In this document: in pieces, positions 1 to 62,027 of the stretch
Numbering within the stretch: the stretch's first letter is position 1
How the letters are laid out: each line of letters begins with the position of its first letter
Notes under the pieces: generated by a model
Seen by the model: only the letters and a program-made list of their open reading frames with translations
Told to the model about the DNA's origin: nothing
Databases searched by the model: none
From: Epiperipatus broadwayi
Lineage: Eukaryota; Animalia; Onychophora
Length of the DNA stretch: 64,000 nt
NCBI GenBank assembly: GCA_028023455.1
Contig: JAQFVV010000007.1
Location: forward strand, 12,896,001-12,960,000
Reading direction: 5' to 3'
Position numbers and translations under genes: made by a program

Positions 1-606
1 GATCATCAACAACGATGATGTAATGTCCATTGGATTCTAAAGGTAATATAAAAGGAAAAGTTTGAAAATTATTAGGAGTTATTACGATGTGACTATATGT
101 GTTAGTGCGGACTTGAAGGAAAAGGGATTGAAAAGACGCAATCTTCAATCCCTTCAGTTTTGTTTAAAAAAAAAAAAGAAATGACATCGTTTTCTACATT
201 GAGGACCAGCCAAAGCAAAAGACCTTCGGATGAATAAATAAATCGGCCAGCAGAATACCAATCTCTTTAGGACGGCATGGGAATTCATGTTCAAATGGCA
301 AGCAATGGATAAAAGGAACATTTTGAAATCGTAAGAAATTTTTGAACTCTCAGCTTTAAATATATATAATTAATGAACATTTCTAAACAATAAGAACTTT
401 ACTTCTAAACTTGTTCCGTATTTAAAAAAAAAAATAGAAATATATTCCTATCTGACCAAACTAAATTATTTATTAATTAGGTATAATTTTATTTGATGTA
501 TTTCTTTTGTAAAATCATTTCCATTTCTTTTTTTTTTTTGTTCTTTTAAGTTTTTATTATGATTTCTGTTTTTCGATAAATTAAACTATATAAATATTAA
601 ACTTAA

Positions 607-1056
607 GTCGGGTGTGAATGGCTATATAGATTTGTAAAGTTATATTAGGGGAGGGTAATCTTAGGTTATTCATTCTGTAGTTGAATTAGGTCAATGGATT
701 GGATATATTGGTGTAATTAGTAGATGTAGTACGAGATTCGCTACAGGCAGAATCACTATTATATGCCGCACACACTCGTTTTGCCTATGGGAGGATTTAT
801 AAGATGGAGACTGCAGTTCTTTCCTATGTAGTTTTTTTTATTGCTCTCATCATCAGATAGATGTAATATTCCTATCTGATGAGAAGCAGTTTCTTCTCTT
901 AACTTAATTGTGCTGCTGTATTCGTATTACATTGAACACATCGATATATCAGATGGATTAAAGTTTGGTTTGACTGTGAACCTTTGGCCTAAGGTTAAAC
1001 AAGGATTGAATATTTTCTTTTCAAATGAAAATCTATGTAGTCTATTTATACTCGAC
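607..1056 (+). ncRNA. Hairpin module A (450 nt rod), copy 1
   Basis: Five stacked helices: 607-633/1029-1056, 656-668/985-997, 673-690/964-980, 702-714/938-950, 724-734/922-932. By hand count 81 pairs of which 19 are G:U. Nested apical hairpin tcagatag/ctatctga at about 852-879. Confidence 0.8.
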
Positions 1057-1084
1057 ACTCTAAATAAAGATGTATTAAATTTAA

Positions 1085-1383
1085 GTTGGGTATAGACGCT
1101 TGCATGGGTTCGTTACCAGTTGATTATGTTTTTGGTTTTCATATTTGATCAAAATATATAGACATTCGGTAAATACTGATACCTTACGGTGAGTATCTAA
1201 GATGTATTTATGTCAGATGTCTTTTAAGTTATTGGTGTCAATGCGGTGTCTTATAATGAACACCATTGGGTTTCTTGAATTCCCTATGCAATTGACAGTG
1301 TCAATGACTTTGTATTTTGATCATTTATGTTTATTTTGAAATGTTTTTGACCATGTAATCTATGTAACCGATCTATACTCAAC
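1085..1383 (+). ncRNA. Hairpin module B (about 300 nt), copy 1
   Basis: gttgggtatagacgcttgcatgggtt pairs with aatctatgtaaccgatctatactcaac using several G:U; tgatcaaaata pairs with tattttgatca; small apical stem gatac...gtatc. Confidence 0.7.
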
Positions 1384-1544
1384 ATTAAAAACACATTTTA
1401 TAAACCCATCTGTGCGAACTTATAAAAAATTAAAATGTAAACTTATAATATTATAAAAATTAAAATGTAAATTTAAATTCTAAAATCAAGTTAAAATCCA
1501 AAGTAAAAGTTATTCTAAAATAATGCTAAATTTTATATATGTGT

Positions 1545-1970
1545 GTAAATAAATGTTTGTGTGTTAATTATTGGCAGTGGCTTATTTTATTCTTTTTTAT
1601 ATATTCTGAGATAAGAATTTATTATAAATATAAATCTCTGCTACTCCCTGAGGTAGTGACAATGGGCTAATGACCGGATATCAAATTATATATAATAAAA
1701 AAACTTTTTAATTATGTATCTGCCTACTTTATAAATTTTCTAGGTTCAAATGCCTTGTGGCACCCTGTAGTGCAGATGATGTTAAGATAGACTTTTTCTG
1801 GATCGTTATAACTGACCACCCAACTTGGGCCGATCTATTAATAAAAACCACGTATATCCTGAGTAAATTTCTTTTTTCAGAATGAAATATGTTTATCTGT
1901 TTACATAAAGTCGGATACTTTAAATCTTATAAAAGCACTGCCAGAAAGAAATTGCACATATATTAAACAT
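1545..1970 (+). ncRNA. Hairpin module C, copy 1
   Basis: tggcagtggctt (about 1572-1583) pairs with aagcactgcca (about 1933-1943); taatgaccgga pairs with tctggatcgtta; atctgcctac pairs with gtagtgcagat; tip tgcc-ttgt-ggca. Outer and inner helices are also present in copy 3. Confidence 0.65.
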
Positions 1971-2069
1971 GAGAAAGTATTAATAATTTTAAATTGTATT
2001 TTGTTAAAAAGAAAGTCAAAAAGTTGCAATTAATATGTTTTTTTTGTTTGTTAATATATATTATGCTTT

Positions 2070-2232
2070 AACATGTATAGGTGCGCACAGCCACATAAGT
2101 TTATGATCGTAAATGTAGTACCTTACAATGAGTACTATTTGGGAATTTACTTCATAGTAACCCTATTTAAGCATTTCAATCAGTCATAAATAAGTTGGTG
2201 GTATTTATAATTGTGCTGCAAATATATATGTT
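2070..2232 (+). ncRNA. Hairpin module D (163 nt) between the tandem copies
   Basis: Helices 2070-2079/2223-2232, 2082-2090/2211-2220, 2091-2094/2198-2201, 2100-2107/2183-2190, with 3 G:U on the + strand. No homologue seen in copy 3. Confidence 0.5.
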
Positions 2233-2799
2233 TAAACCCATTATTTCTTAAAACATATTTACCTCAGTGCAACCTTCTTCAATAAATAATTTATAAAATT
2301 TGCTTGTCATGCCGTGTGTAAAAATAAAATGTATAAAAAAAAATAGAACGCTTGGGGGGAGGAAGCATAGACGTAAATGGTCCTTAGGAAAATGATAGTC
2401 AACATTTTTTTTTTGTATATAGTTTTTATACTAACCGAATGTTTTGTAAATTTTGTTAATCGTGTACTGTAATTACTAACCTTAAGTAATTTTTTTTTTT
2501 TGTTTATTTTTTTTAAAGCAAGTTTACTGATAGGTAATGGGCACAGACGACATTACATTGTGTTTTATTATTAAACATGAAAAAAATAAAAGTTCACAAA
2601 TAAAAATTTCTTTTTTTTTAAGAATTAAAAATTGAAAATTAAAAAATCATCTTAAACTCATATATATATAAAATCGCACAGATAAAAAAAAAAATTATTA
2701 AAATAAAACTTTATTAAAAATAGAAAAACTAAATCTTTCAACAAAAAGATTTAGAGATAAAAATATCTTTAAGTTTGGAAAACACATTAATTAATCAGA

Positions 2800-3461
2800 A
2801 ATGGAAATGATTATTTTAATTAGTCAAAGTGATCTAGCCTGTGGGCATTTAAATGTATAAGCATCGGTCAGATAGGAAAAGAATAGAAACTAATAGCAAA
2901 TGAGAGAAATCCATCGGGAAATCGGACCTCAATGGAAGGATCATCATCAACAATGACATAATGTCCATTGGATCCTAAAGGTAATATAAAAGGAAAAGTT
3001 TGGAAATTATTAGGAGTTATTACGATGTGACTATATGTGTTAGTGCGGAGTTGAAGGAGAAGGGATTGAAAAGACACACTCTTCAATCCCTTCAGTTTTG
3101 TTAAAAAAAAAAAAGAAATGACATCGTTTTCTACATTGAGGACCAGCCAAAGCAAAAGACCTCTGGATGAATAAATAAATCAGCCAACAGAATACCAATC
3201 TCTTTAGGACGGCATGGGAATTCATGTTCAAATGGCAAGCAATGGATAAAAGGAACATTTTGAAATCGTAAGAACTTTTTGAACTCTCAGCTTTAAATAT
3301 ATATAATTAATGAACATTTCTAAACAATAAGAACTTTACTTCTAAACTTGTTCCATATTTTAAAAAAAAATAGAAATAGATTCTTATCTGACCAAACTAA
3401 ATTATTTATTAATTAGGTATAATTTTATTTGATGTATTTCTTTTGTAAAATCATTTCCATT
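2800..3461 (+). ncRNA. Hairpin module U (about 660 nt, branched)
   Basis: aatggaaatgatt 2800-2812 pairs with aatcatttccatt 3449-3461; ggtcagatagga 2866-2877 with tcttatctgacc 3382-3393; cctcaatg 2927-2934 with cattgagg 3134-3141; apical gaagggattgaa 3059-3070 with ttcaatcccttc 3082-3093. Confidence 0.75.
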
Positions 3462-3541
3462 TATTTTTTTTTTTGTTCTTTTAAGTTTTTATTATGATTT
3501 CTGTTTTTCGATAAATTAAACTATATAAATATTAAACTTAA

Positions 3542-3995
3542 GTCGGGATGTGAATGGCTATATAGATTTGTAAAGTTATATTAGGGGAGGGTAATCTTAG
3601 GTTATTCGTTTCGTAGTTTGAATTTAGGTCAATGGATTGGATTTATTGGTGTAATTAGTAGATGTAGTATGAGATTCGCTATGGGCAGAATCGCTATTAT
3701 ATGCCGCACACACTCGTTTTGCCTATGGGAGGAATTATAAGATGGAGACCGCAGTTCCTTCCTATGGAGTTTTTTTTTATTGCTCTCATCATCAGATAGA
3801 TGTAATATTCCTATCTGACAAGAAGCAGTTTCTTCTCTTAACCTAATTGTGCTGCCGTATTCGTATTACATTGAACACATCGATATATCAGATGGATTGA
3901 AGTTTGGTTTGACTGCGAACCTTTGGCCTAAGGTTAAACAAGGATTGAATATTTTCTTTTCAAATGCAAATCTATGTAGTCTATTCATACTCGAC
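3542..3995 (+). ncRNA. Hairpin module A, copy 2
   Basis: Duplicate of 607-1056 with the same helices; at least one G:U in the basal stem of copy 1 is G-C here (ctattcatac). Confidence 0.8.
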
Positions 3996-4023
3996 ACTCT
4001 AAATAAAGATGCATTAAATTTAA

Positions 4024-4322
4024 GTTGGGTATAGACGCTTGCATGGGTTCGTTACCAGTTGATTATGTTTTTGGTTTTCATATTTGATCAAAATATATAG
4101 ACATTCAGTAAATACTGATACTTTACGATGAGTATCTAAGATGTATTTATGTCAGATGTCTTTTAAGTTATTGGTGTCAATGCGGTGTCTTATGATGAAC
4201 ACCATTGGGTTTCTTGTATTCCCTATGCAATTGACACTATCAATGACTTTGTATTTTGATCGTTTATGTTTATTTTGAAATGTTTTTGACCATGTAATCT
4301 ATGTAACCGATCTATACTCAAC
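4024..4322 (+). ncRNA. Hairpin module B, copy 2
   Basis: Duplicate of 1085-1383. Confidence 0.7.
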
Positions 4323-5368
4323 ATTAAAAACACATTTTATAAACCCATCTGTGCGAACTTATAAAAAATTAAAATGTAAACTTATAATATTATAAAAATT
4401 AAAATGTAAATTTAAATTCTAAAATCAAGTTAAAATCCAAAGTAAAAGTTATTCTAAAATAATGCTAAATTTTATATATGTGCGTAAATAAATGTTTGTG
4501 TGTTAATTACTGGCAGTGGCTTATTTTATTCTTTTTTTACATATTCTTAGATAAGAATTTATTATAAATATAAATCTCTTCTACTCCCTGAGCTAGTGAT
4601 AATGGGCTAACGACCGGATATTAAATTATTTTTTAAAAAAATTATTATTTTTAACTTACGTATCTGTCTACTTTATAAATTTTCTAGGTTCAAATGCCTA
4701 GTGGCACCCTGTAGTGCAGATGACATTAAGATAGACTTTCTCCGGATCATTACAATAGATTTTAAATTCTGTTTAATGCTGTAATTTTCATTTATTTTAT
4801 TTTTCTTAAGCGTCTTTTTTCTTAATGATAAAGTTTGATGTTGACACTAGATAGTATTAGTTTAAATGTTGTTGTTGTTGTTGTTGTTTTTTGCCCTTTG
4901 TAGACTCGGACATTATATCGTATCCAATGACCCTGTTCTAATTATGTGTGTAGTATGTCGAGGATGCATGGCTATATAGATTTAAGTTTTGAATTCCCTA
5001 CTTAGAAACAGGAACATTGATTTACAGGAAACTCATACCATCATCTGATTAGTTACTTTCTATGAATACCTTTAAATTAAAATAACTTTTTTTTTAATTT
5101 TTGTACATTTAGTGTCGTTTTCCTGTCTAATAAATTAAGATTTTATAATATTTTTTTACATTATTGTTCATTTATTTTAAGGCTAAGTAAAAATTTATTT
5201 TGTGTACAAATTTTTACTATCATTAAATTTCCAATACTGATGTGTAATATTATCCATTTTTCTGGATACTTATTGGAAGAGGGAGATAGGAGTCTCACAA
5301 CAAACTATTTAAAGGCTCTTTCAGCTTATACAAACAACGTTTTTTTTATTTTTTATTTGGTTTTACAG

Positions 5369-5404
5369 GTATTACACCCTTGGTATTAGAAATATAAAGA
5401 CACT
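5369..5404 (+). other. Candidate 36-nt internal exon
   Basis: Long polypyrimidine tract ending ttttacag and donor CT|gtaagt. One frame open (YYTLGIRNIKT); product not recognised. Confidence 0.4.
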
Positions 5405-5519
5405 GTAAGTATGAAATAAATTGTGGTTTAAACCTGGTAAAAAAATTGAAATTTGTTATTGTTAATGATGAAATGATTTGTGCCTAATTAGTGCATGACT
5501 TAAAGACAACAACTTAACA

Positions 5520-5810
5520 TACATGTCATCATTACCATTTTTATCTACTATAACTCTAATGCGTAATGACGATATCTCCATGTTTAGTTCATTTTTTCTG
5601 AATTCTAGTTACTCCCCATTGTACCTGCAAATTTTCTTATTTTATATATCCATTTCACATGTAGCCTTTCTTAAGATCTTCTATAATACATTTGAACTCA
5701 ATTCAAAATGTATCTCTATTTATCTACTATCATCTATTTTATAGATATTTCATGACTGGATCCATTTTCTTCCCAATTTTTTCAATGATGTCAGTGGCCA
5801 CTAATCGTTC
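5520..5810 (-). mobile_element. RTE-clade LINE, degenerate 3' fragment
   Basis: Reverse complement is similar to 6360-6660 (TDIIEKI... segment through the 3' end with atgatgac tail remnant). Confidence 0.7.
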
Positions 5811-6169
5811 TTCACAATAAAGTATGCATGAATAACATACACATACAATATCTGTAAGTACATTTATAATATAAAAAATGAAATTGATTTAACATATAAT
5901 TTCTTGACCCATGTACAATAAGAATGTGATTGTAAATTTAGTATTACTTTTTATTCAATGTGTATGAATCTTAAAGCAAGATGAACATTTTTTAAAATAA
6001 AAAATTGTTTTTTATATTTATTGGAGAGTAATAGAGTGATTGATTTAAGTAATGTAAATAAGTATTTTTCCACATGCTAAGAAGATTATTAACAACTGCC
6101 TTGGTCAGATTATTACTACAGATTGAAACATAATGAATGAAATTAATCATAGAATTAACTTAAAACTAA

Positions 6170-6665
6170 AAAGAAATATACCTATGTGTTTGAGAAGGAA
6201 GATTTTTAATAAATGTGTTTACCAGTTCTTACTTAGATATATGAGACTTGGACACTTAATAGCAGAGCAATTCAAAGACTTTAGACTACTCAAATAAGTA
6301 TGGATAGATGCATGTTAGGAGTAACAAGAAGAGATCAAAAACATAATATATGGGTAAGAGAACAAACAGGTATTACTGACATTATTGAAAAAATTAAAAG
6401 ACTGGAGTGGAGTTGGGCTTGACATATTGCTAAAAGAGATGATAATAGATGGACAATTGAAATCTTAAACTGGATTCCAAAAGATTGTAAAAGACCCAGA
6501 AAGAGACCACATGTGAGATGGATGGATGAAATAAGAATGCATGCAGGGGTGATTTGGAAAAGAGAGGTTAGAGATCAGAGAAAATGAATTGAACTTGGAA
6601 AGTCCTTCATCCTGCAGTGGATTGATAATGGTTGACAGTGATGATGATGATGATGATGATGATGA
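6170..6665 (+). mobile_element. RTE-clade LINE 3' end (5'-truncated, pseudogenised) with (GAT)n tail
   Basis: Translates with stops and a frameshift to IPMCLRRKIFNKCV-PVLT*IYETWTLN...WVREQTGITDIIEKIKRLEWSWA*HIAKRDDNRWTIEILNWIPKDCKRPRKRPHVRWMDEIR, a typical RTE ORF2 C-terminus; gatgatgat tail at about 6644-6665. Confidence 0.92.
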
Positions 6666-26480: not shown

Positions 26481-27376
26481 TAAAATGTCATTATGGAGCC
26501 ATAACTATAAACATAAGATATTATAGAGCAGTATGCTAAGAGAGGGAAAATATATTAAAAATAGCACCAATGATTATGTATTTTTATCACTTGGTTATAG
26601 CATTGGGTTGCAATTTATTCAACCTATTCTCAAGTAACTAACTGCATTTTTTTATTATTATCAACAGGATCATAGAAAACCCTAATGCAAACTTCATATG
26701 AATTATAGTTTTATGGGGCTTAAAATAAGAAATTACTGAAAATGATTAATCCTGATCACAAAATTGGTACTTTGGTGAAAGTTGTTCTATGAGACATATG
26801 TTTTTCACAGAGGCAAAAGTAGTGCCACTCAGTGCAAGAATAGTGACCTGTCATGTTTGATGGGACAGATGTCTAAGATCATCAGTGATTGCTATTGTTG
26901 TGACTCATATAACTTATTCTTTGAAGATTTGAGGCAGTTATAAAGGGTTAAATAACATTGATAAGTGTGGTAGAAAATGAAATGAGAAAAGAATGTTCTT
27001 TTTTTATTATCTTCTGTTATTAATAATCAATTGCTCATAATTAAATCAGAGATTTATCACAATTGTTTGGTAAAATGAATAGCTTGTTATTTTTACTAAA
27101 AGAAAAGTTAACCAAGGGTCCTATAACTTCAGAAATTATATTACATCACTATTATTGAACCTATGACTATTTATTCATTTTTATTTTCATAATCAGTGTG
27201 GCAAGATTTATCCCATAGGAGAATAATTTTTCTATCACTTTATGACTTTTTATTATAACTGTAATAAGAGCACCAAATTTTTCATACAGTAGTGTCACCA
27301 AGTGCAAGCCTTCATAATCAATGGATGCAGGAATATTTATGCATAAAATCACTATCTAGTGCTTAACCATCCAATA

Positions 27377-27418
27377 TCCCCAGACTAATTTCCAGCTTAT
27401 GGCTTTTATCAGTGAGAA
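27377..27418 (-). ncRNA. Minimal type-I hammerhead motif (G8A mutated)
   Basis: Minus strand reads UUCUCA-CUGAUAA-AAGC-CAUAA-GCUG-GAAA-UUAG-UC-UGGGGA; stem I UUCUCA/UGGGGA pairs. Confidence 0.55.
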
Positions 27419-27848
27419 GCCTTAGATTTGAAAGCACTGCTTCTAGATCTTAGGATCTAATGTAACCCTCCAGAGCCACCTTTTACCTATTTTGTTAACT
27501 ATATGACTAGGAGCCCAAGATGAAAACACCATAATGTTTCCAACATTATCAACAGCATATATAAGCATATGAAATGGTGATCATGTGATGTTTTGATGGT
27601 TTTATACCTATCCTGCCCATAGGAAAATGGTAATGGTGGTTTTTAAAAAACTAAGAACCCAAAAATGTATAGATCCTGAACTGAGTTTAGATCTATATGA
27701 TTATACAAGAAAATGAGATTGTTTTTGAATCGTTTAGGTGTTTTTATTTTGGGATTCTAGATTTATAGTAAACCAAATAGGTAAAATGTGGCTGCTGATG
27801 GGTTGCATTAGATTGCAAGATCTAGGTGTAGTGCTCACAAATCCAAGG

Positions 27849-27891
27849 TTTCTTACTGATGAAAGCCACAAGCTAGAAACTAGTTTCGGAT
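27849..27891 (+). ncRNA. Minimal type-I hammerhead ribozyme motif (degenerate stem I)
   Basis: CUGAUGA (27856-27862), A-AGC-CACAA-GCU-A, GAAA, palindromic CUAG, then UU cleavage-site equivalent. Confidence 0.6.
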
Positions 27892-29747
27892 ATTGAAGGA
27901 GTAGTCACTAGATATTGATTTTATGAATACACCTTCTTGCATCCATTGATTATGAAGGCTTGCACTTGGTGGTACTACTGTATGGTGAGTTTGATACCCT
28001 TATTAACAGCATATATAATCATATAAATTGGTGATCATGTAATGTTTTGATTATTTTAATCTTAACTGTTATACTAATTATTATATTTATTAAGTAATCC
28101 TCCTAAACAAATTTAACATAATTTAAACAATAGTTTTGACAAAATTTATGCTTGCATTTCAAATTTACATCTGTACAAAAATCTTATAATTTAGTAGTAT
28201 CATAAAGAAAAGTTTAGAGATTTCATTTTGAAAATATATTAGCTAGTGGCTCTATTAATATCTTCAGTTTTATTATAATAGTTATAGATAGATTTCATAG
28301 TCATTAACGACTTATACCAGGATTTTGTTCACATTTACATACATCCACGCAACCCCCATTGTTTAGAATGAATCTAAAGGTAAGACTCCAATTGCATCTA
28401 AGATCAAATCACACTGGCTTTATTTTTGAATATGAAAAAAAAAATTGTTTGGGTCCTGATAAAAAATCTATTTTAATGGAATAATTTACTCATAAATTCT
28501 TGGTTTAACACACAGAAGGGAGAAGATGATTTGAGTTTAATCTTAGATGGCAAACCTATGTCCTGAATTTTTGATGCGTCCAATCTATTTAACAACTTTT
28601 TAGACATTTTTTATGGGGTAACTTTTCTTTTGATATCTGGTAACAGCATACTCTAAAACATATTATATTCTTATGCTTAATTTTTACTATTTTGAAATAT
28701 TTTATTTCAGTCTACAGTCATTTTTTTTCTTTACAGTTGCGATAATAAGTTAATCCCTTGGATAATTTTTCCAAAAAGAAAATAGTGATTAATTTATTAA
28801 ATTTTGGTCTTGAAACATTTTTGACTCGGTTATTGATTTTTGATTTATTTTTTTTATGTAAATTTGTAAATATGTGTATATATTTTTTTAAAAATCCAAA
28901 AATCAAAAATGTTTTTAAATTGCTATCTGATAAATTAATCTTTCTTGGAAAAATTATTTAGGATATAATTTTTTTATTTCAAGTTAATATTCAATATTTA
29001 TGAGTAAAAAGAAATGTTGACTAATAGTATTAGCTTTAGTTGACTGATAATAAAGTGTCTAAATGCAATTAAACATAGATTTATTCTACTCACAAAGAAA
29101 AGTTTATGACTAAATGATGATAATTAGTATTTTCAACACAAGACATTTATATTTGTGATTTAAAATTTTTTAATCACAGTTTATATATATATGATTAAAA
29201 CCTTTTCATAATTTATAAAACCTAAATGCATATGTACTTTATATTCATTACGCGTCTAAATTATTTTATTATGCAATTGCAGATGTGTGATACTCAAATC
29301 AACTTTTAAATCTAGACTGCTCTCTTGGTTGAACAAAATTGAGTTTTCCTTCTAAAGTTCCTTATTAATTTTTAATAAAATCTTTGTTGAGATTAGTCAG
29401 CAAACTTATAGCTTTATAATTTTTTTAATCTTTTTTACTAGCTTTTATACAATAGAATAATTTTTTATTATTTTAATTATGGCAAGCATTTTTTTATTTA
29501 ATTTAACTATCAGTATAAACTTTATATATGTATATATAGCCGCAATAAAAGTAATTCGTGCTAAATCAGGTCTTTGTTTACCTTAGTCACATTTGTGATC
29601 ATATGTATCGGTTTATGAGATAGAGCTGATAGCTGAAGAGAGCTTGACAGTCTGTGTTCGAGTCTATTATGGTTACATCTAAACTCCAAATATATAATTT
29701 ATGAATATTACCAAATTCACTACTTCCTTTATTTTGCTGTGATATCT

Positions 29748-30313
29748 TATATAAATGCAATTTATCCACTTTACTCTGAACACTTTTAACAAAACCTTTT
29801 ATTGTACATACATGCATACATTTCTACTGTTCTGCAGTCTTCTTCAGAATTATGATATAATGAACAAAATAAAATACAGAACTATATAAAAACCATACAA
29901 AATGTAAACAATAAAACAAAAATAACTAAAATAATATAAAATATGACAAAAGATAATAAAACTGAAATAAACATAATCAAACCCCCAAAAATAATCTAGT
30001 TAATATAAAATATACAATATAAATATAAATTATACATGTGCATTCCTGATTGTATATATACATGAACAACTATTTGGGTTTGATTATATTTCAGTTTTAT
30101 TATGTTTTCTTATATTTTATGCTTTTTTATTGTTTACATTTTGTATGGTATTATTTATATAGTTATGTATTTTATTTAATTTTGTTCATTATATCATAGC
30201 TCTGAAGAAGACTGCAGGGCAGTTGAAACATAAGATTGTGTATGCATATATGTACAATAAAGTTTTTTTGCTAAAAAGTGTTAAAAGTTGAATGAGTACA
30301 TTGCATGTATATA
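29748..30313. mobile_element. Family P2 palindromic repeat with a hammerhead motif in each arm
   Basis: Inverted arms of about 235 bp (29748-29985 and 30066-30313). Confidence 0.75.
30195..30240 (+). ncRNA. Minimal type-I hammerhead motif (family P2)
   Basis: CAUAGCU-CUGAAGA-A-GACUGC-AGG-GCAGUU-GAAA-CAUA-AGAUUGUG. The mirror copy on the - strand at 29812-29854 has GAAA-UGUA; CATA and TGTA are both CpG-decay products of CGTA. Confidence 0.6.
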
Positions 30314-30823
30314 GTTTTTATTTGTATTCAATCAAATATTATATATGTATTTGTGCACATATGTGCCTGCAGAAGGGTGTTTGCTGTTAACTGAAAGGAA
30401 AACATTTGACTGTTGTTTAAGGTATTACAATAATAGCAAGACAAATTCCTAATGTTCACTTCATAAGTTATTTTTGGTGCAGGTGTTATTACAATACATT
30501 ATTCATATGTAGTAAGCTGAATCCTTTAATAGGCAGATCACAGTCTTTAGAAGCACCAATTTATCAATAGTTTTAGTAATTTTTGTATAGCCCTACTTTG
30601 GCCTAGTGAAAGGGAAGAGTGTCAGACTCGAGCATAAAGTTCTCTCATTTATTCCCATTCTGCTATTTTCAGTATTCAAATCCTTATAAATGCTTAAGCA
30701 AGAGTCATTTGATTAGATTTTTATTTTCTGGATTTTTTTTACCTTAAACTAAATTATCCTCTTGTAAAAAAAGATTTATTAACAATGATATTTTTTTAGT
30801 TTTGATCATTTACAAGATCATGC

Positions 30824-31810
30824 TTACACAAGCTTTTTACATGGAAGCAAAACTCTCTATACAGTAGCACAATTCAGTGCAAACCAGAGTAATCAATGGA
30901 TGCAGGAAGGTTTGCAGTTAAAATCCTTATCTACTTCCTACTCTTCCAACATTCAAAGACTAGTTTCTCACTTGTGGTAATAATCAGTGAGGAGCCTTGG
31001 ATCTGAGAACATTGCACATAGAATTTAGTTTCCAGCAGTCATCTTTTGCCTTACTAGTTAACTATAAAGTTTTGAGTCCAAAATGAAAACAGAAATGTTT
31101 TCAATTCAAGCTCATTAGCTTGTACAGTCTTGTAGATCTGAACTCCATTCAGCATCCATACTTTTTGGTGTCTGGTTTATTAATAACCACATTCACCATA
31201 ATCCTATTGACAGGATTTGTATTTAACCACTGAACATCACATAATTACCATTCTTTATGCTTACATAAGCTGTTTACACACAGGCAAATCTCTCCATACA
31301 GAAGCACCACTTTCTCCATGCATTGATTACTCTGACTTTCACGAAGTGATGTTACTGAATGCAAAGTTTTCCTCCTGTGTAAACAGATTGTGTAAGCCTA
31401 AAGAATGGTAATCATGTGATGTTAAATAGTTTAATACCAATTCTGACCAATAGGATTATGGTTAATGTGGTTATTAAAGAACCAAAGACACTCAAAAGTA
31501 TGAATGCTGAACTGAGTTCAGATCTATATGCTTGTACAACCTAATGAGCTTGAATTAAAAACACTATTGTGTTTTCCATTTTGAATCCAAGATAAAAGAT
31601 TGTTTTTGGAGGGTTGCATTAAATCCTATGATCTAGGTCCAGTGCTTAAAGATCCAAGGCTCCTCACTGATAAAAGCTAGAAACTAGTCTGGGGATATTG
31701 GGTAAGTTGGCACTAGATAAGGATTTTATACATAAACCTTCCTGCATACATTGATTACACTGGTTTGCACTGAGTGGCACTACTATATGGAGAGTTTTGC
31801 CTCTGTGTAT
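30824..31810. mobile_element. Family P1 fold-back element of about 1 kb: two inverted 437-nt units each with terminal redundancy
   Basis: Arms are complementary along their whole length. Terminus ttacacaagct... at 30824 recurs at 31261. Hammerhead motifs at 30952-30994 (-) and 31661-31695 (+, UCCUCA...GAAA-CUAG-UC-UGGGGA, stem II deleted). Confidence 0.8.
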
Positions 31811-33221
31811 ATTTCTATCGCATAAACTAAAGACTAAAATACATTTTGTAGATAGATTATTCAATGCAATAAGAACAATTGAGCCTTTAAGATGTGAAAT
31901 AAAATATGTTCTTTCTTTAGTGAAATTTTTTATGCAAATATGATGCAAGGTTTTCAGCTCTTATTAATCGATTATAGTATTTATGTACTTTGATGCAGTA
32001 AGTGGAAAATTATGGAGCTCAAAATCTATAATTTATAGCCTGGATCCATCATTTCTAGTGATGAAACATCCTATCTAATGAAGTGTCCTATTTTTTAACT
32101 TAGTAAGAGCTGCAATATTACATTAAAATCTAGATTGCATTTTAATGTAAATAAAATGAAAGTAATATGCTGAAAACATAAACTTTTAAACAACTGTGTT
32201 AATAAAAGATTTAATAAAACAAATTTCATATAAAAGTTATAGTAATTATTATATTATTGCAATAAAAACCTATTAAGAAATGTTTTTGTAGAACTGTGAC
32301 TAATTTAATAATACATTTTTCTGAAAAATCATATAGTGTAGCTCTCATAATAATTCAACACTTGTAAATTTTTTAGAGTATCTCTAAAAATATGTTCAAT
32401 GTTTTTTATTGCTTTTTAAAATTGTCTTGACATAAGTTTAGGCAATGTAAAATTAAACTATAAAGATAACAAGTATGACACATTGTTAAAAACCAACATC
32501 TTTGAGTTAAATCTTACTTATTTTTATGATTAGGCATAGATTAAAATATTGGATTTTAAAATGGGAGTTTTTCAATCTCTTCATATTTTCTAAGCTTGTC
32601 TATTTCTTATGTTATTATTTCAATAATCATATATTATTGTTTGTATCTTTTTTTCACTTTCCAGTTTCCTATATTTCTTTTTATGAAATAATGATTTCAT
32701 AAAAAATTATTTTATAAATTCTGCATGTAAAAAATGAAAAAGAATACATGTAATTTTTATAAAAAAATAATAATTTATTATTATCATTAGTGAACACATA
32801 GAAACTAATACAATCATTCTAACTTCCAAAGCAAAAGAAAATAATTAAAAAATTAGATATAGATTTTGCAATTATTATGCTAACCAATTTTCTAGTTGAA
32901 TGCTCTTCCTCATATATAAAATGTGGATTGTGATACTGTCTTTTTATTTCTGTAATGGACATTTTCTTTTGGAGGGCTTCAATATTTTTCTTAATTGTAA
33001 GTCTTTATTATATTTTCAATCATGTCCTAGCAATATAAAAAACCCTATGAGATCTTTTTTTTTTTTTTTGGAATGGCTTTTTTTATAAGATGAATGGCCA
33101 AGTCATCATAAAACCAGAAGTAGAACATAATAAATGGTCTGAATTTATTCAGTTTTATTTCCCATGTCTTTCTTATGTTATATTTAAATAAAGTCTATCT
33201 CTACATTTTTTTATATGTCTA

Positions 33222-33293
33222 AGCATTGACTGGGAAGTGAACCCAGACAAGCTGCTTGGAAGACAACTATGCTAACCACTAGGCAACCAATGC
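33222..33293 (-). pseudogene. tRNA-Gly(TCC)-derived pseudogene or SINE head
   Basis: Reverse complement GCATTGGTTGCCTAGTGGTTAGCATAGTTGTCTTCCAAGCAGCTTGTCTGGGTTCACTTCCCAGTCAATGCT: acceptor, anticodon (TCC) and T stems pair; T-loop/B-box is mutated (TTCACTT) and CpGs have decayed. Confidence 0.8.
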
Positions 33294-36200
33294 TTGACAT
33301 GACTATCTCCAAGTTAATACAGTAAAAGGAAAAATAACAGTTTTATTGAAAACTAATAAACTGAATAGTTGTATCATTATGATAAAGATCATACTATACT
33401 ATTTGATATCTGTTGATTACTTAAGTTTATAATAGAGGGCTCTAGAGTAAAGTGAAAATAACAATACTTGGGAGATCTGTCACTTTTGTAAAAAAAAAAA
33501 TAAAAAAAAATAAAACTATGTTTAAATCCATTAAAATTGGTTTTCATTCAAGAATAACTGATTTTTTCTAACATTCTGTTTTATGCAAATGGCTGCTATT
33601 GGAAAATGCAAAAGCCAAAATAAGTAATTCCAAAAAAGCTATGGTGTAACATAAGACTTTGAAAGAGATTTAAAATGAAACCAACTTATCAAAAAAATGA
33701 AAAAAGCTATTAGAAATCCTAATTTTCAGTAATAGAACAAGTTGAGAAATAATTTGGAAGTTAAACTCCATTGAAAATGTTAAAGAAATAAAAAAAAATC
33801 CTTTGCAAAGATAGTTTAAAGAATTTCACCATAACATCTGATAATTGTAAAGCAGAACAAGTTTCTAAAGCTGCAAACCAGCCAGGAAAGACAGGAAATA
33901 GCCCAGGGAACATAATAGACACAAAAAATATTCATAGAACAATGGGTAAAAGAAATTCTATCAGTAAATCTGTCATGAGAAAAAAGTTATGATTTTGTGG
34001 TGTCGAACTGGAAGTGGCCAAATGCAGCAAAATGGTGCAGGGGAAAAATAAGAAAAAAAATATTTTGAACATTAATTCGATCTAAATTGTAGAATCAAAC
34101 AATATAGAGTATGATTTAAGCTATCTCCCTGCACAAAAATTAAACTTTTCTGATGATCCAATCAAAGTTATTGGGCTGCTTTCAGTGAAATTGGGGTGCT
34201 ACAAAAAATAAAAAATTTCCAACTCAATACAGAATTACAATGAAGTGAATCCTGAGTCAAAAAACAACGATTGAAAGATACAAATAAGTATAAATGATGT
34301 TATAGATATAAACAGAGATACTGAAGTTCAAAATTAGTTAACATTGCTTAATTCAACAATTATTTAGAATACTATAAAGATTTATTGCAAACTATTGGAT
34401 TGCATAACTGAAGCATTGATTACTGGTCAACACATTGAATTCAGTCTAGACAAGCAGAATTGAAATAATATAAATAGGAAAGAGTCATTGTTGAAATCTT
34501 ACTACAATAGGCCTACTTTAGGGTTACAGAAACCAATTGTTAAAATATGATTTTGCCATCAACTTCTGTGTTCTACAAACAATAAGAAAGAATCTTACAA
34601 AGCTAGTCCCACTTTTCATAGTTGGAATGACCTAGTGGAATCTTACAATGCTAATCATACTCTTCATAATTGGAACAATTAAGTGAAATTTTATAGGCTT
34701 GATAGTAAATCATGGAGAACTTTGTTGTTGAATGAAATAAAAAATTATATTGAACTTTGATGGACATCTGCAGTTGATAAGGCTATCAAACAAACTTAGA
34801 ACTCCTCTGGCAAATGGAAAAATGGTATTTAATTGTTTGTGCAGATAAATCTAGCTGTGATTTTGAGATTACTATGAATCAATGTATTTTATATCATGTC
34901 CTTTTGTAAATCAAGGTATTTAATTTCACGAATGCATAAGTGATCACCCGTAAAAAATGGATTTGATTCCATGTGTTTTAATGTAATAGAAATTTTTTGG
35001 TCTAGGTGGGCAGGTTATAAGGTCCTGGCCTATTTGGATTGACATGTAAAAACTTTGACATTTGTTCATGCTGCTTTTGCCTAACAGTGCATTTTGGGGC
35101 AGGTGGACTGGGTTGGTCACTGCCCATGTGAACTGTTTAATGAGAAATCATAGGTTAATGATCATTTGATTTTTCAGTCTCAGGGTGGATGACATGGACA
35201 TGAGGGGGTTATTGGTCTGTGGGGGTGGATGGTGATCATTGCTATACCTAAGGATAGGATGGCCTGGCTTGGCTTTCGATGCCTTTTTTGGTTTGATTAA
35301 TGCTCTGAATTTGCAAAACCAATGTTACACTCGGAGAAAGCAAAACTCACTTATGGGGGAAGCCCAAAGTGGATATTCCTTACCCAAGGGATGGGTCTGG
35401 GACTCAAAAGGCATGGTTATGGCTGTTCAGTCATGGATGAATTCTGGGGGGGGGTCCTTCAGTTGGGTAAAAATCATCTCTCCTGTTTGGATTTTATTTT
35501 GAATGGACCATGGCATCTTCTTGATCGACTGCCATTGAATTGATGCTTGATTGTGATATTTACTTTTTGTAGGGATACCAGAAACTATTATTTTATTATG
35601 TAAGGCAGTTGGACTAATTTGAGCTACACCCTATTGCATAATTTTAATATATCTTTCTGATATTTTTGGCTCACAGGTGTAGGTGACAGAATGTTGTTCA
35701 GCCCACATGAGCTTATAGAATAGTTAATATGTGTTTTTCATCTATGGGTTGAGTACCCATAGAATTGTTTTGTAACCTTTGACCAATAAAGGTACTTTTT
35801 GGAACAACTATTTACATTTATTTGAAATTTTGCATTACTAAGGAGGAAATAAATTCATAAAATTAAACAATTGTGTAAAAAATGGAATAATGTAAAAAAG
35901 GACCACTTCATAAAATATATTTTTTTTATTGATATTTTAAAGATAAATGCATAATATAGAAATATATTTTTTGGTTTTATATTTCTTACAGAGTTTAGAA
36001 TAAACATTACATAAAGTGTCATGACTTTTAAACAAATCATTGTTTTTCATAAAGAGTAACTGAATTCTGATAACACATGTATTGTAACTCAACTGTAAAT
36101 CTTAAAACTGATTCTATTTTATTTTCTGGTTTTCTTTTTGAAAATAAACTTTTACATTAAGTCACATAGTTATTCAAAATTCTGAATAAATATATATTTA

Positions 36201-37246: not shown

Positions 37247-37906
37247 CTCTCTTAAGTCATCCATTCTATCTCATACAACTAATACATATGGCCACACATA
37301 TGTGGAAGATATAAATAATCTCAAATATACATATTTAGTTCTGAACCAGCACACATCAATTAGTCCATATCATCATCTCCCACACATATATTTAATCAGT
37401 GTTCAGTTTTGTATTAAGATAATAAATCTTCATACTTTAATGGATAGGCTTCAATCCATTACACACTCCAAATCCTCAGCCTTCCATACCATTGAAAGTC
37501 TGATGATGGATCACCACCAATTCTTTGTTAATGAAAGTATTATTGTCATGAATACTGCCCATCCCTCTTCTGTGCATCAGAGTAATTTAAGGTCAAAATG
37601 GGCATGCCAATAATATTGGCATTAAGAAGAGATTTAGGAATTCATCAATTGATTTTCAATGGTATTGATGACTGAGAAATTGGAGAGCATAGTGGATTGA
37701 AACTTGTCCATTAAAGTGTGAATTTTTGCTATCTTAATATAAAACCAAATCCTGATTATATATATATATGTATGGGAGATGATAATCTGAACAAAGTGAT
37801 GAGTCCTGGTTCAGCACAAAACATGTATATTGAAAATAATTTATCTTTTTCATGTGTCTGGTCATGTGTATTGGTTGTATGAAATAAAAAGAATGGCTGA
37901 AGAGAG
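37247..37906. repeat. Family P3 palindromic element (diverged arms of about 310-330 bp)
   Basis: Left ctctcttaagtcatccattctatctcatacaactaatac versus the reverse complement of right gtattggttgtatgaaataaaaagaatggctgaagagag; axis near 37575. Confidence 0.75.
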
Positions 37907-52664: not shown

Positions 52665-53779
52665 ATTATCATTTTGCTTGATCTAATCTTCTATAAAACC
52701 TCATGATGAAGCATGTCAAGTTATAATGCCCAAATTGTAAATCTTTGCCATATAATAGATGTTTCCTATTAATTACTAGATGTTAGATATAACAAATTCG
52801 CAAAAATGAAATTAATCGTATTTCAAATATTCATAATAATAATGGAATTCTGAGTTAAGAAAACAACGATATAAATGGCAATACTTGGGAGATGTTATCA
52901 ATTTTTTATTGAAAATTATATCATATGATGTAATACTTATTTTAATTAAACTTAAATGGTAAGCTGTCACTTATTTAAGTATATTTTCATAATATCAAAT
53001 GTTTTTTTTTTTTAAAAAAAATTATATCTTCAGAATATTCTTTTTATTTTTCTAACTTTTAGAAAACTATCTTTGAATGTTTTATTTACGAAAAAATATA
53101 GATTAACATAATATATTATTAATATTATTAAAAATCAAATAAATGATGAAACTCTTGTTTATAAACATTACATTTTTAACCAAAACTATTTATGGAATAA
53201 TCGAGTCTGAAAACATTATTACAATAATCCACAAGCCACAAAGAATTACTAAGTTACATTTATATATAATGTCCACCTTATTTTATATCAATGCCAATCT
53301 GTTTATCAGATAAAAAAAGATCACTTCTATTTGAATAAGACATTGTCATTGATATGAAATAGGCGGGTATTATCGGCAAGTATATTTAAATAATTTGCTG
53401 TGGGATTGAACTTGAGACTTATTTAATAACATTTCCAAACTTGATTGATTCATGAATATATTATTATAAGTAAAAAAAAATATTGTGAGTTTGTTGAAAG
53501 TCATTACAATTTTTAATAAAGTATATATCAGTGATCAAAATACACCTGGGTCTCATATTATGCTGATTTTTTAAATGCGATTTTGAAGTTATGCGATTCT
53601 TGTTTCCTCTTAATATCTTTGTATGCATTTTTCTTTTATGTCATAAAAATTATTAGATCAGAAAACAACTCCAATAATGTGTTATTAATTTAAATATTAT
53701 ACATTTTGTGCACTCACACATCATATTTAAAATAATAGTGCATTATCAGAGTTTGACTTTCATCTAATAATTTCAATAT

Positions 53780-55870
53780 TTTCAGTGCTTTATAATAGTA
53801 CTGTCATAGATTTCATGCAATAAAGAAGTTCATAATTCACTTAAAATCAGGATTTCCCCATTTTATATTGTACCAATCGGAATGTAAGTGATGATTGAAT
53901 CTAACCGCAAAAACAATATCTGCACTACAAGAGCGCCATCTAGGCATTTGAGCCTAGAAAAATTTAGAGTAGGCAGATACGCGCTGTTAAGATTCCACTT
54001 TATTTAAATATTCTGATCATTAGCCCAAGTCACTAGCTCAGCGGAGACGCAGAGATAAAAATCTATAAATTTTATATCTTAAATATCAAAGAGTAAAAGC
54101 CACTGCCAGAAATTAACATATAAAAATATTTATTTACGCACATATAAAATAATATTTAAATTTTGAGGAATAAGTTTAACATTTTAGATTTTTATATTAA
54201 CTTTTAATTTTACATTTAACTAATTTCAATGAGTTTAATTATTATTTAGATAGTCAAGTATGAATAGACTACATAGATCTGCATTTGAAAAGAAAATATT
54301 CTTCCCTGATTTAACCTTAGGCAACAAATTTCGCAATCAACTGGTGCCAATCCATCTGATACATTCATGTATTCAATGTAGCATGATACGACAACACAAA
54401 ATACTATATTGTCAGGAATGTACATCTGAACAATAAGTAGAAATAGAGAAGAGATTGACTCTCCACCAACAGGAATGTGACATCTGTTGGCAAGTAGATC
54501 AATAAACAAAAAACTCCATAGGAATGGACTGCGGTCTTCTGCCAACTTACAAACCCATCCATAGGCAAACAGAGGGTGTGTGGCATATATCTATAATCCT
54601 GCCCGTAGCGGACCTCATACTACATCTACTAATTACACAAATATATCCAATCCATTGAACCAATTCAACTACAAAATGAATAACCTAAGATTACCCTCCC
54701 TTAATATAACTTTACAAACTATATAGCCATTCACGCCCGACTTAATTTTAATATTTAAATACGTTCGCACAGATTTGTTTAAAAATGTTGGGTATAGATC
54801 GATTACATAGATTCCACAGTCAAAAACATTTCAAAATAAACATAAACGATCAAAATACAAAATTATTGATACCGACAATCGCAGAGGGAAACTTATAAGT
54901 AACCCAATAGTATTCACCATAAGCTACTTGCGTTGTCACCAATAACTTAAAAGACATCCGAATAAATACATTTTAGATACTCACCGTAAGGTATCATTAT
55001 TTATCGAATGTTTATATATTTTGATCAAATATGAAAACCAAAATATAATTAACCGCAAACGAATCCATGCAAGCGTCTATAAACAACTTAAATTTCATAC
55101 ATTTAACCAATCTTTACAATAAGAAAAAAAAAATTTGAAATGATGTTTATCAATCGGAAAACATATAAAATTAAACATTATTAATTTGATTTAAAGACTT
55201 ACAAAAGTCAGATAAGAGTCCGTTTTAACATTTCAGTTGGCTTGTTTATCAATTTGTAAAACTTGACGAAAGTTCTTGATTGATTTTAACAATTGTTCAT
55301 TTCAGATAGCTTATGGTAGAAGAGTCCAGGTTTCTGCTTTTATTAATTCCCGCGATGCCTCTGTTGGAAGGGAATGTTCTGGAGATGGCAATAGCTGGTT
55401 CAAAGTATCACAGTCTTTTCATTTTTTTTTTTTAATAGAGAGTGTGGTATGTGCATCATACCTCATCTCTCAAACACAAACGCTGGAACTGTCCGAAAAA
55501 AACTGTATATCCCTTTTTATATTATCCACCAGGATTCAATGAACAAAACGTCACTAGTCTATCACTTTCGTTAGGGTCCGAGCCAAGGCTTAGTGCTTCC
55601 ATTGGTCAAACTAAAATTTCTTTCTTCTCTTATCTAACTTTTCATCTGACTTTTTAATTACACAGCTTTTAGATAATTAATAAACAATCATTTCCATTTA
55701 CAGATTACAGGAATTAATTAATACCTGTTTTTACTTTAACTTACGTTATTTTTTTATTAAAATATTTTTATATTTCAATCTGGTATTTTTTATTAAAAAA
55801 AATACGTTCAGATACTTTTTTTTTTTGTTTCTGAAAAAAATATTTTTAAAGTTTAGCATCTGTGCGAATG
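53780..55870 (-). ncRNA. Copy 3 (diverged paralogue, inverted) of the multi-hairpin locus, module order U-B-A-C
   Basis: Reverse complement aligns blockwise to copy 2: U 55698-55137, B 55087-54787, A 54741-54253, C about 54150-53780, plus upstream tcgcacagat near 55860. Stems are retained with G:U pairs on the - strand. Confidence 0.7.
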
Positions 55871-56033
55871 TATATACGTATAACAAACATTTTTAATTTT
55901 AGCGTTTAGTTTTTTACTCTTATTTGCGAACTTTTAAGTTTTTATTTTAAATTAATGTAACGACATATTTATGTATCGTTACAATATATACACATTAAAT
56001 TTTACAAGATTATAATGTAAATCTATTCAAATG

Positions 56034-56927
56034 TTATAGATGCCTATAGTATGCATGCTGTTGTTTTTGCATTTTAAAACACATTCTATTTTTGCTTTTT
56101 AAAAAAAGAGTACATATTCAATTAATTATTTAGTGTCTGTAATTTTATTTTTAAATAGTGAATAACAGTGGTGGGCACAATTAAATTTGCCTATTAAAAA
56201 TTAAAATCTGATTTTTAATTGTAATTAACAATTTAAAAATTACATAATGTGATGTGAAACAATGAAATTTCATTTTTAAACAAATTAAAAATTAAAAAAT
56301 TAAAGACAAAAATACAAATTTAATTTTTAATTGTTAGTTTTAATTAAATTTTACCCAACAGCAGTGAGTATGTGTCTTTTTATTATCATAAGTCTAAGTT
56401 CTTATTTTTATTTTAAACTTTTAGTTTACCCTAATGGAGAAGAAAAAACACCCAAGAAAAGGAATTTCTTTGGAAACAAAAATTTCAATTTTAGATTGCT
56501 TAGTGACAGGGGAATGATCAACAGCAATTGGAAAACATTTTAGTTTGGGTGAGTCCACTATAAGAGCAATTAAAAAAATAAAGTTGGTGCTAGTTGTATT
56601 TCCTCTTGTGATGAATCTGATGTCTTACTAGTTCACAAACAAACCTGCATATATTTAAATAGCAATAATGATTAAAATACTGTACATGTATGAAAAAATG
56701 TAAAATACTGTAAATTACACATAAAAATATACTGTTTTGAATAAAATTATATCCTATAGTTAATGAAAAAAGTTTGTCTTGTATCAATTTTTTTTCAAAT
56801 TTGAAATTTTTTATTAGTCATATTTTATTTTCTTATTTTTTTTTAATGCGAATTTTAAAGTAATTTTACTTTGTTTTTCTGCTTTTCTGAGGAACCTATC
56901 TACTGCATAAAATGAGACCCAAGTGTA
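56034..56927 (+). mobile_element. Tigger/pogo internal-deletion derivative (5' boundary uncertain)
   Basis: 56434-56583 encodes MEKKKHPRKGISLETKISILDCLVTGE*STAIGKHFSLGESTIRAIKKIK, a CENP-B-type N-terminal HTH; 3' end ctactgcataaaatgagacccaagtg-TA resembles a CpG-decayed Tigger TIR. Confidence 0.75.
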
Positions 56928-61364: not shown

Positions 61365-61401
61365 CAGCATTTATTTTTATAGCGTCTGTATACAATTGTA
61401 A

Positions 61402-61947
61402 TTACATTGATATCGGCCTTTCAAGTCAAATTGTGCAAACGCTTTTATGAGTGTTAAATAATAAATGAATACCCTCTGACCAAACAAGATATAGAATTTA
61501 TGCAGGAATAAAAGGAATCCTCTTATTCCTATGACTCAAATATTTATATATGAGCAAATCTGAAGTACTGGCACAGAAGGTGTGACTATAGAACAGTCAC
61601 TTTAAATTACTATATATAACGTATGAATGAATGACGCTGATGAAATTTACTAGAATTTACTGAACGTCATTCCAACTGAAACTTAATCATATATATAAAT
61701 CAGCATTTATTTTTATAGTGTTGGAATGACGTTCAGTAAATTCTAGTAAATTTCATCGGCATCATTCATTCATACGTTATATATAGTAATTTAAAGTGAC
61801 TGTTCTATAGTCACATCTTCTGTGCCAGTACTTCAGATTTGCTCATATATAAATATTTGAGTATCTTGTTTGGTCAGAGGGTATTCATTTATTATTTAAC
61901 ACTCGCAAAAGCGTTTGCACAATTTGGTTTGAAAGGCCAATATGAAT

Positions 61948-61951
<4 letters not shown>
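61402..61951. repeat. Recent long inverted repeat (about 232-bp arms, about 96% identical, 43-bp spacer)
   Basis: 61402-61676 versus 61720-61951: about 9 substitutions by hand count plus a 43-nt insert in the left arm. Confidence 0.95.

Positions 61952-62027
<76 letters not shown>

Follow-up and report, generated by a model that had tools for sequence, protein, structure and literature searches.

The first 4,755 nucleotides of a 64-kb stretch of the Epiperipatus broadwayi genome (Onychophora; assembly GCA_028023455.1, contig JAQFVV010000007.1, positions 12,896,001 to 12,960,000 of the forward strand; this whole stretch is called the window below) contain two direct copies of a composite non-coding repeat, and two modules of this repeat, A and B, fold into long hairpins as sense-strand RNA. 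A third copy, inverted and much more diverged, lies at ~53.9–55.95 kb and keeps both hairpins. Selection on the sense-strand single-stranded fold of A and B is supported by strand-specific fold energies in all three copies, a wobble-blind tally of arm mismatches, a G+T skew confined to the hairpins, and compensatory substitutions; the selected molecule was probably RNA rather than single-stranded DNA. We explain A and B best as cassettes of structured RNA within a repeat that is non-coding, present in high copy number, and either mobile or satellite-like; their hairpins would act for the RNA of the element itself, most plausibly during propagation, a reading that we credit and doubt in about equal measure. 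An earlier sequence-only reading had taken the locus for a candidate gene family producing hairpin RNA (hpRNA) and endogenous small interfering RNA (siRNA); the thousands of variant contigs from two species labels, the shuffling of the cassettes, and their neutral local divergence speak against such a family in the host.

Strand-specific folding of modules A and B

The fold energy of each module as RNA was compared with that of 60 dinucleotide shuffles on both strands (Table 1). Module A (~460–500 nt) beat its shuffles on the sense strand in every copy (z −5.4 to −6.5, with energies of −138 to −164 kcal/mol) and gave antisense values of about 0, and module B (~300 nt) reached −7.6 to −9.2 on the sense strand and about −4 on the antisense strand. 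Of the hairpins described from sequence alone, A and B were therefore recovered, and the five basal helices of A in the minimum free energy (MFE) fold hold 87 pairs, 20 of them G:U, against 81 and 19 counted before. The two modules carry 25–32-bp near-continuous helices, and their termini are complementary over 27–30 nt, counting G:T. When DNA energy parameters were used, B remained at z −5.2 to −7.5 and A fell to −1.6 to −2.7 (−2.7 in copy 1), so that the signal of A is nearly gone, which favors RNA. The sense-only fold is seen in three copies, one of them in the opposite chromosomal orientation, and since the inverted paralog shows the same sense-strand asymmetry, this asymmetry is tied to the element, not to its chromosomal surroundings.

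The remainder of the repeat behaved differently. Almost the whole unit had been claimed to fold, and only two of the five claimed hairpins, A and B, beat their shuffles. Module U (2798–3461) gave z −2.3 and −2.5, a weak signal, alike on both strands, that is attributable to its 15-nt closing inverted repeat; C and D lay between −1.2 and +0.9 on both strands, with no fold beyond chance, and the 1.1-kb middle and the spacer were near 0. Selection on a plus-strand RNA, as proposed for the unit at large, thus stands for A and B as a sense-strand single-stranded fold, and falls away for U, C, and D, which form no hairpins beyond chance. No segment stood out in 200-nt fold windows, and A and B emerged only with module-sized ones. 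The window also holds stronger, strand-symmetric palindromes at ~61.5, 31.1, 37.4, and 29.8 kb; as inverted repeats are this common, it is strand asymmetry, not palindromy, that distinguishes A and B. These palindromes (~61400–62000, ~31100–31600, ~37300–37800, and ~29800–30200) reach −248 kcal/mol per 400 nt on both strands, and the one at ~61.5 kb is flanked by long AAT/TAA microsatellites.

G:U over A:C asymmetry in the hairpin arms

Arm mismatches were tallied blind to wobble pairing, by aligning the 5′ arm to the reverse complement of the 3′ arm and scoring all mismatches alike. Mismatches of the G:U type outnumbered those of the A:C type by 33:5 in copy 1 (p = 4e-6) and by 41:7 in the paralog (p = 6e-7). 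By comparison, three control inverted repeats in the window were balanced, at 27:21, 20:13, and 5:4. The G:U excess asserted earlier for the plus strand survives this stricter alignment, and it extends to the diverged locus, where 41:7 is the overall figure; the arms of module A in copy 1 alone gave 20 G:U and 3 A:C, compared with the approximately one A:C first reported. The G:U share of the MFE fold is ~20%, against 19% in shuffles. A raw count of G:U pairs in hand-picked helices is consequently circular and no evidence, and we place the evidential weight on the arm alignment and on covariation.

A G+T skew is found only in A and B (GC skew +0.16 to +0.21, AT skew −0.15 to −0.22) and is absent from U, C, and the spacer. 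Its direction flips with the element in the inverted paralog. Being limited to A and B and flipping with the element, the skew does not fit a regional, replication-linked, or whole-transcript mutation bias.

Covariation between lineages

The tandem copies were then compared with the paralog, from which they differ by ~24% in A and ~17.5% in B, on an RNAalifold consensus. In A, 95.9% of cells stay paired, and there are 8 double-sided and 25 one-sided pair-preserving changes, as against 0–2 and 7–15, respectively, in slid controls with partners moved by 1–3 columns. Module B has 98.4% of cells paired and 4 double-sided changes (0–1 in slid controls). Together, the two modules show 12 double-sided compensations, transversion pairs among them. 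The one-sided changes, ~30 in number, pass nearly all through G:U (12 G:C<->G:U and 18 A:U<->G:U), and A:C occurs at 0–3 paired columns per sequence. For a permutation null, each substitution seen was moved at random to a site sharing its base, which preserves the substitution spectrum; 16 pairs were broken in A against 29.6 ± 3.4 under this null, and 8 in B against 16.5 ± 2.3.

Layout of the composite repeat

The window is AT-rich (~27% GC), has a single open reading frame (ORF) of 110 aa or more over its 64 kb, and reads as eukaryotic, repeat-rich DNA. The direct copies (1–1815 and 2939–4755) are 95.3% identical over 1,822 nt at an offset of ~2,938 nt. Of the tandem 2.9-kb unit described previously, the two direct copies are confirmed; because position 1 aligns with 2939, so that the window begins inside the left copy, the unit length is an assumption and one possible reading. 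Homology to the third copy, which is collinear with ~2570–4721, suggests a composite of ~2.1 kb (about 2570/2674–4755) plus a spacer of ~0.85 kb. Aligned to 55952–53918 on the minus strand, copy 2 is patchy in U and 75.7%, 82.5%, and 70.5% identical in A, B, and C. There are no long ORFs in the repeat unit, and a Pfam search of six ORFs from the unit and the paralog gave no match. Profiles of A and B searched with nhmmer against the 64-kb window returned the three known copies and short terminal or apical echoes only, and conserved stretches of both modules, used as exact patterns against metagenome and prokaryote genome collections, gave 0 matches.

Table 1. Coordinates of the composite repeat, its modules, and a control inverted repeat in the window (z, fold energy relative to 60 dinucleotide shuffles)
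Feature	Position	Strand	Remarks
Copy 1 of composite repeat	1–1815	+	End of U, then A, B, C/D; left side cut by window edge
Spacer between copies	1816–2669		Repetitive; z ~0 on both strands; many 90–99% identical contigs over it
Copy 2 of composite repeat	2674–4755	+	U (2674–3490), spacer S, A, linker, B, spacer S, C/D
U core	2798–3461		15-nt closing inverted repeat GAAATGGAAATGATT / AATCATTTCCATTTC; no long hairpin
Spacer S before A	3491–3538, also 556–602	+	Homologous to after-B spacer 1385–1425, 4324–4364
Module A, copy 1	603–1060	+	Rod-like hairpin with branched apex; energy −140.7 vs −105.0 in shuffles; z −5.4 sense, −0.8 antisense
Module A, copy 2	3539–3999	+	z −5.9 sense, −0.6 antisense
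Module A, diverged paralog	54249–54746	−	~24% diverged; extra 37-nt apical hairpin; z −6.5 sense, 0.0 antisense
Module B, copy 1	1085–1384	+	Hairpin with two apical branches; z −7.6 sense, −4.1 antisense, −5.2 with DNA parameters
Module B, copy 2	4024–4323	+	z −9.2 sense, −3.9 antisense
Module B, diverged paralog	54786–55088	−	~17.5% diverged; z −8.9 sense, −3.7 antisense
Modules C and D	4324–4755, also 1385–1815	+	A-rich; 30-nt local repeats; 70.5% identity to paralog
TCGCACAGAT, 5′ member of 10–12-nt inverted pair	2674–2683	+	Partners 4347–4356 and 1408–1417 (minus strand)
TCGCACAGAT pair in paralog	55858–55867 and 54765–54774	− and +	Exact matches
Control inverted repeat	5526–5795 / 6375–6650		65.7% identical, 280-nt arms; G:U:A:C 27:21

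Cassette behavior, copy number, and local neutrality

Modules A and B behave as cassettes: they occur alone, together, and in both orders (U-B-A-C in the paralog versus U-A-B-C in the tandem copies), and each has its own leader and tail, with the leader ATTAAAYTTAAGTYGGG and the 3′ terminus ATCTATGTA...ATACTCRAC common to both. Joints in the read contigs run from U straight to B and from A straight to C, and include one A variant without the apex. The spacers before A and after B, ~55 nt in length for S, are homologous in both loci, and S is homologous as well to the B-to-A junction of the paralog (54747–54785, minus strand). From these sequence relationships the loci may be read as two phases, S-A-s′-B-S and s′-B-S-A, of one periodic array between homologous flanks; the array spans only about one period, with two different units. 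Just downstream of copy 2, at 4954–4983, the 5′ terminus of A occurs a third time (GTCGAGGATGCATGGCTATATAGATTT); this occurrence has no matching 3′ terminus and no significant fold, and may be a truncated family member.

Assembled read contigs (Logan) of three runs were placed on 1–4600. Each run contributed 1,860–2,790 short contigs, mostly 90–99% identical, and the summed depth across 154-nt bins ranged from ~20 to ~42,000, a spread on the order of 1,000-fold, with A and B most abundant. This region thus appears to be a mosaic of repeat families with differing copy numbers. Words from A and B scored 0.81 in 3–4.5-Gb DNA runs of one species label and 0.49–0.61 in small runs of two species labels, versus 0.25 for all 6 kb taken together. 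As a test of 5′ truncation, depth was followed along each module, and its gradients were inconsistent between runs. The sequence-only reading had seen no transposon hallmark; high copy number, cassette behavior, and a conserved inverted pair (below) say otherwise. It had also named a match to a high-copy DNA transposon with target-site duplications as counting against its proposal, and of these features we found the high-copy repeat mosaic and no such duplications.

Between the local copies, divergence is 3.3% in U, 4.8% in A, 2.7% in B, 1.9% in C, and 13% in D, and in A these changes break stems about as often as chance predicts (11 vs 10.5). As A and B diverge locally as fast as the non-folding flanks, the fold is kept among source lineages and not at this locus. 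Conservation in source lineages together with decay at the individual locus is the usual pattern of mobile elements. Module D (1651–1815 vs 4590–4755) stands apart, its 13% comparing with 2–5% elsewhere, and a high-depth block at ~1695–1848 (TTCTAGGTTCAAATGCC...GTAGTGCAGAT) ranks with the most abundant pieces of the read contigs; both points suggest a separate repeat or a conversion boundary.

Inverted pair, termini, and ribozyme searches

The motif TCGCACAGAT has 5 exact matches in 64 kb, where 0.01 are expected. Its pair brackets U-(A)-B in both loci and is kept even though U is barely alignable between them, so that the composite may have in it its (sub)terminal inverted repeat. Past the pair the two loci remain homologous, over no less than 100 nt on the upstream side and 370 nt on the downstream side. 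A 14-nt palindrome, TTATAATATTATAA, follows ~30 nt after the 3′ member and is confined to the tandem locus; short palindromes of this kind are common in AT-rich DNA. A complementary inverted repeat next to the 5′ member was looked for and not found.

Several candidate signals were discarded. Judged by eye, an RNA polymerase III origin does not hold: B has a B-box-like GGTTCGTTACC, but this is not kept in the paralog, and T-runs of at least 4 lie inside both modules. A piggyBac-like TTAA duplication does not fit either, TTAA being present only loosely at both B ends and absent at the 3′ end of A. The CTTAYRRTGA loop motif of the B apical hairpins was rejected as a signal: its match at 58151 has no hairpin, and the small stems are individually non-significant. 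Separately, the spacer contains at 2108–2142 (plus strand) a small hairpin whose loop carries the B-apex motif CTTACAATGA and whose stem is compensated relative to B (AGTAC/GTACT vs GATAC/GTATC).

Rfam searches, run at gathering threshold across the whole window and at E ≤ 10 on 1–6000 and 53600–56100, returned no ribozyme or other credible family. A pattern search for the CUGANGA...GAAA hammerhead core found none at the A and B junctions, and the lone core match, at 820–856 on the minus strand, is not kept in copy 2 or the paralog. As a control, Rfam on 27000–32000 reported no hammerhead at gathering threshold or at E ≤ 10 despite a minimal motif at 27856, so the negative Rfam result for ribozymes is weak, not absolute. 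That motif (27856–27890, plus strand; CTGATGA...GAAACTAGTTTC) resembles the core of a minimal hammerhead, its helix III being a palindromic CTAG, and lies in an inverted dimer at 27262–28005 (arms 27262–27543 and 27724–28005, 79.5% identical, G:U:A:C 20:13). Minimal hammerheads with a palindromic CTAG helix III are of the kind reported for Penelope-like elements, and the motif suggests that retrozyme-type elements occur in this genome. The only Rfam or ARAGORN match in the window was a tRNA-Gly (TCC) gene at 33221–33294 on the minus strand.

Interpretation and rival explanations

We can postulate the following course of events. At positions 1–4755 lie two direct copies, both young, of a high-copy composite repeat that codes for no protein and has at its center a brief periodic array in which two related cassettes, A and B, are joined. 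The sense transcript of each cassette would form a long, imperfect, G:U-dependent rod-like hairpin, kept by selection in propagating source copies while local copies decay neutrally. Such a stable, self-paired transcript would be needed for multiplication, in which a reverse transcriptase would use it as template or recognize its structure, as proposed here by analogy with retrozyme and short interspersed element RNAs. The A-B versus B-A phase difference could then come from multimeric or circular intermediates or from unequal exchange within the array. Several observations weigh against this account. The covariation is based on only two independent lineages, and the reciprocal test of A, with the paralog structure scored in copy 1, was not significant (30 broken vs 32.7 expected), largely as a result of apex rearrangement. 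Module B folds fairly well also as antisense RNA and as DNA. At the four A/B junctions read there was no consistent target-site duplication, and no poly(A) tail, primer-binding site, or ribozyme was found, so the modules are not directly tied to reverse transcription. The RNA nature of the small runs is only guessed, and the contigs carry no strand. Finally, the TCGCACAGAT pair bracketing U-(A)-B and the layout of flank, central repeats, and flank resemble DNA-level elements of the Helentron type.

The same observations can be accommodated, in part, by other explanations. An hpRNA or endogenous siRNA source, in which Dicer would cut the sense transcripts of both modules to ~21–23-nt siRNAs that could silence the same family or a gene, we consider rather unlikely. 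It would account for long strand-specific hairpins with 25–32-bp near-continuous helices and for a fold conserved through compensations, and the high copy number is compatible with it, given that fly hpRNA arms can hold transposon sequence (PMC10317233). Yet neither hairpin is under local purifying selection, high copy number and cassette shuffling are not gene-like, and ~20% G:U with frequent bulges would yield imperfect siRNA duplexes; no target was found in the 64-kb window, where only the three family copies match, and a text search of PMC10317233 gave no support for G:U-richness of fly hpRNAs. The two ideas are compatible, as the loci could be repeat-derived and nevertheless act as an hpRNA-like source. 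A comparably small chance attaches to single-stranded DNA hairpins of a rolling-circle (Helentron/HINE-like) or other one-strand DNA transposon, with A and B as its central repeats and a transferred strand that would need hairpins and tolerate G:T wobble. The layout of a flank, central periodic repeats in variable phase, and a second flank is as this explanation expects, as are the conserved 10–12-nt inverted pair (5 sites vs 0.01 expected), the 14-nt palindrome ~30 nt past its 3′ member in the tandem locus, the good fold of B under DNA parameters (z −5.2 to −7.5), and the abundance in invertebrates of HINEs with central satellite-like repeats. It is harder to square with module A, which barely beats shuffles as DNA (z −1.6 to −2.7), and with a G+T skew that sits in the paired modules and not in the unpaired flanks, which would be most exposed as single strands. 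In addition, HINE monomers are 140–180 bp and not described as hairpins, the putative 5′ subterminal inverted repeat here has no complementary inverted repeat nearby, and the homology beyond the inverted pair (at least 100 nt up, at least 370 nt down) is unlike HINE subterminal repeat positions.

A further possibility, to which we give somewhat less credence than to either of these, is that A and B are hairpin domains of a ~0.85-kb ribozyme-free, viroid-like (rod or dumbbell) RNA element with a multimeric or circular RNA intermediate; this would explain why the S-A-s′-B period stands in different phase at two diverged loci, and why only the sense fold is conserved. Very unlikely, in our view, is an absence of function, whereby old palindromes or foldback miniature inverted-repeat transposable elements (MITEs) would have decayed under strand-biased mutation or RNA editing (e.g., ADAR A-to-I changes copied back to DNA) and composition would make the sense strand look folded. 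The sense strands are indeed G+T rich, and composition alone produces a strand difference of ~30 kcal/mol in shuffles; the genome is full of inverted repeats, and half of the one-sided changes are A:U<->G:U, the ADAR direction. However, the z-scores are already corrected for composition, the spectrum-preserving permutation still shows a deficit of broken pairs, and neither the 12 double compensations nor the 12 G:C<->G:U changes, which are not of ADAR type, fit such decay. In other inverted repeats of the window the mismatches are balanced, the asymmetry turns with the orientation of the element, and even the editing version would call for a hairpin RNA of the sense strand and for its reverse transcription into a copy.

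High-copy repeats tend to be regarded as parasites at the DNA level, and their hairpins as mere inverted repeats. A predicted fold that exists in only one of the two RNA strands, and that compensatory substitutions have preserved throughout a repeat family, offers a clean, testable case of RNA-structure selection within a repeat that is mobile or satellite-like. Should the RNA act as an intermediate in propagation, the range of structured-RNA retroelements would widen beyond the carriers of hammerheads, and under the viroid-like reading it would include a class distinct from hammerhead retrozymes; if the transcripts are diced, small RNAs would arise, outside the insects, from hairpins that a repeat carries. 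For genome scans, these data carry a warning that a hairpin can be genuine, strand specific, and covarying without belonging to a host gene, and that copy number and local divergence should be checked.

Comparison with known systems

Drosophila hpRNA loci are few-copy host loci whose two arms, on one strand, give rise to Dcr-2-dependent siRNAs of ~21 nt, with a primary transcript that increases in dicer mutants and arms homologous and antisense to target genes (PMC10317233). Like them, the locus described here has long inverted-repeat arms, which in hpRNA loci are sometimes tandem and sometimes contain transposon sequence, and a fold on one strand, predicted in our case. Our modules differ in being high-copy, shuffled, and locally unconstrained, which is not the profile of a discrete low-copy host locus. 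Foldback or palindromic MITEs are short, non-coding, and abundant, with complementary termini (27–30 nt here) and whole-length hairpin potential, all of which A and B share. MITE palindromes are, however, DNA-level and strand-symmetric, whereas antisense A does not fold beyond chance, arm mismatches here are 5–7 times more often of the G:U than of the A:C type, and no fixed target-site duplication is recognizable.

Closer in overall layout are the Helentron-derived non-autonomous elements with central tandem repeats, which include HINE, DINE-1, pearl, and Cg_HINE; their subterminal inverted repeats are 11–15 nt long, placed 2–4 nt from the 5′ end and 38–60 nt from the 3′ end, with a complementary inverted repeat beside the 5′ one, and they have a short palindrome near the 3′ end, insert into TT or T-rich sites without target duplication, have an autonomous partner encoding Rep/helicase, and in some cases carry two unrelated arrays (PMC4067079, PMC7492417). 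The composite resembles them in its left flank, short central array varying between copies, and right flank, possibly in the 11–12-nt inverted pair near the edges and, in the tandem locus, the short palindrome after its 3′ member, and in being non-coding and very abundant, as HINEs are in invertebrate genomes. Its units are nonetheless 300–500-nt self-complementary hairpins with strand-specific G:U pairing, where those of HINEs are 140–180-bp satellite-like monomers, and it has no inverted repeat beside the 5′ subterminal one, a left flank of ~860 nt, and homology that continues past the inverted pair.

Metazoan non-LTR (long terminal repeat) retrozymes are hammerhead-bearing tandem repeats expressed as small circular RNAs, defined by a type I hammerhead in each of their head-to-tail, 150–450-bp monomers (PMC7229834). 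The composite shares with retrozymes its non-coding nature, low GC content, monomers of a few hundred nucleotides, high copy number, and perhaps a head-to-tail arrangement, as well as a predicted stable and highly self-paired RNA, a property that A and B have by computed fold, and permuted copies, which are expected from circular or multimeric intermediates. It departs from them in that no known ribozyme was found in or beside A and B, the array alternates two hairpin units in place of one monomer, and this array lies between conserved flanks bracketed by an inverted repeat. Set beside these systems, and with no detectable ribozyme, the composite is a hairpin-forming, non-autonomous repeat with a predicted RNA fold that is strand specific and covaries.

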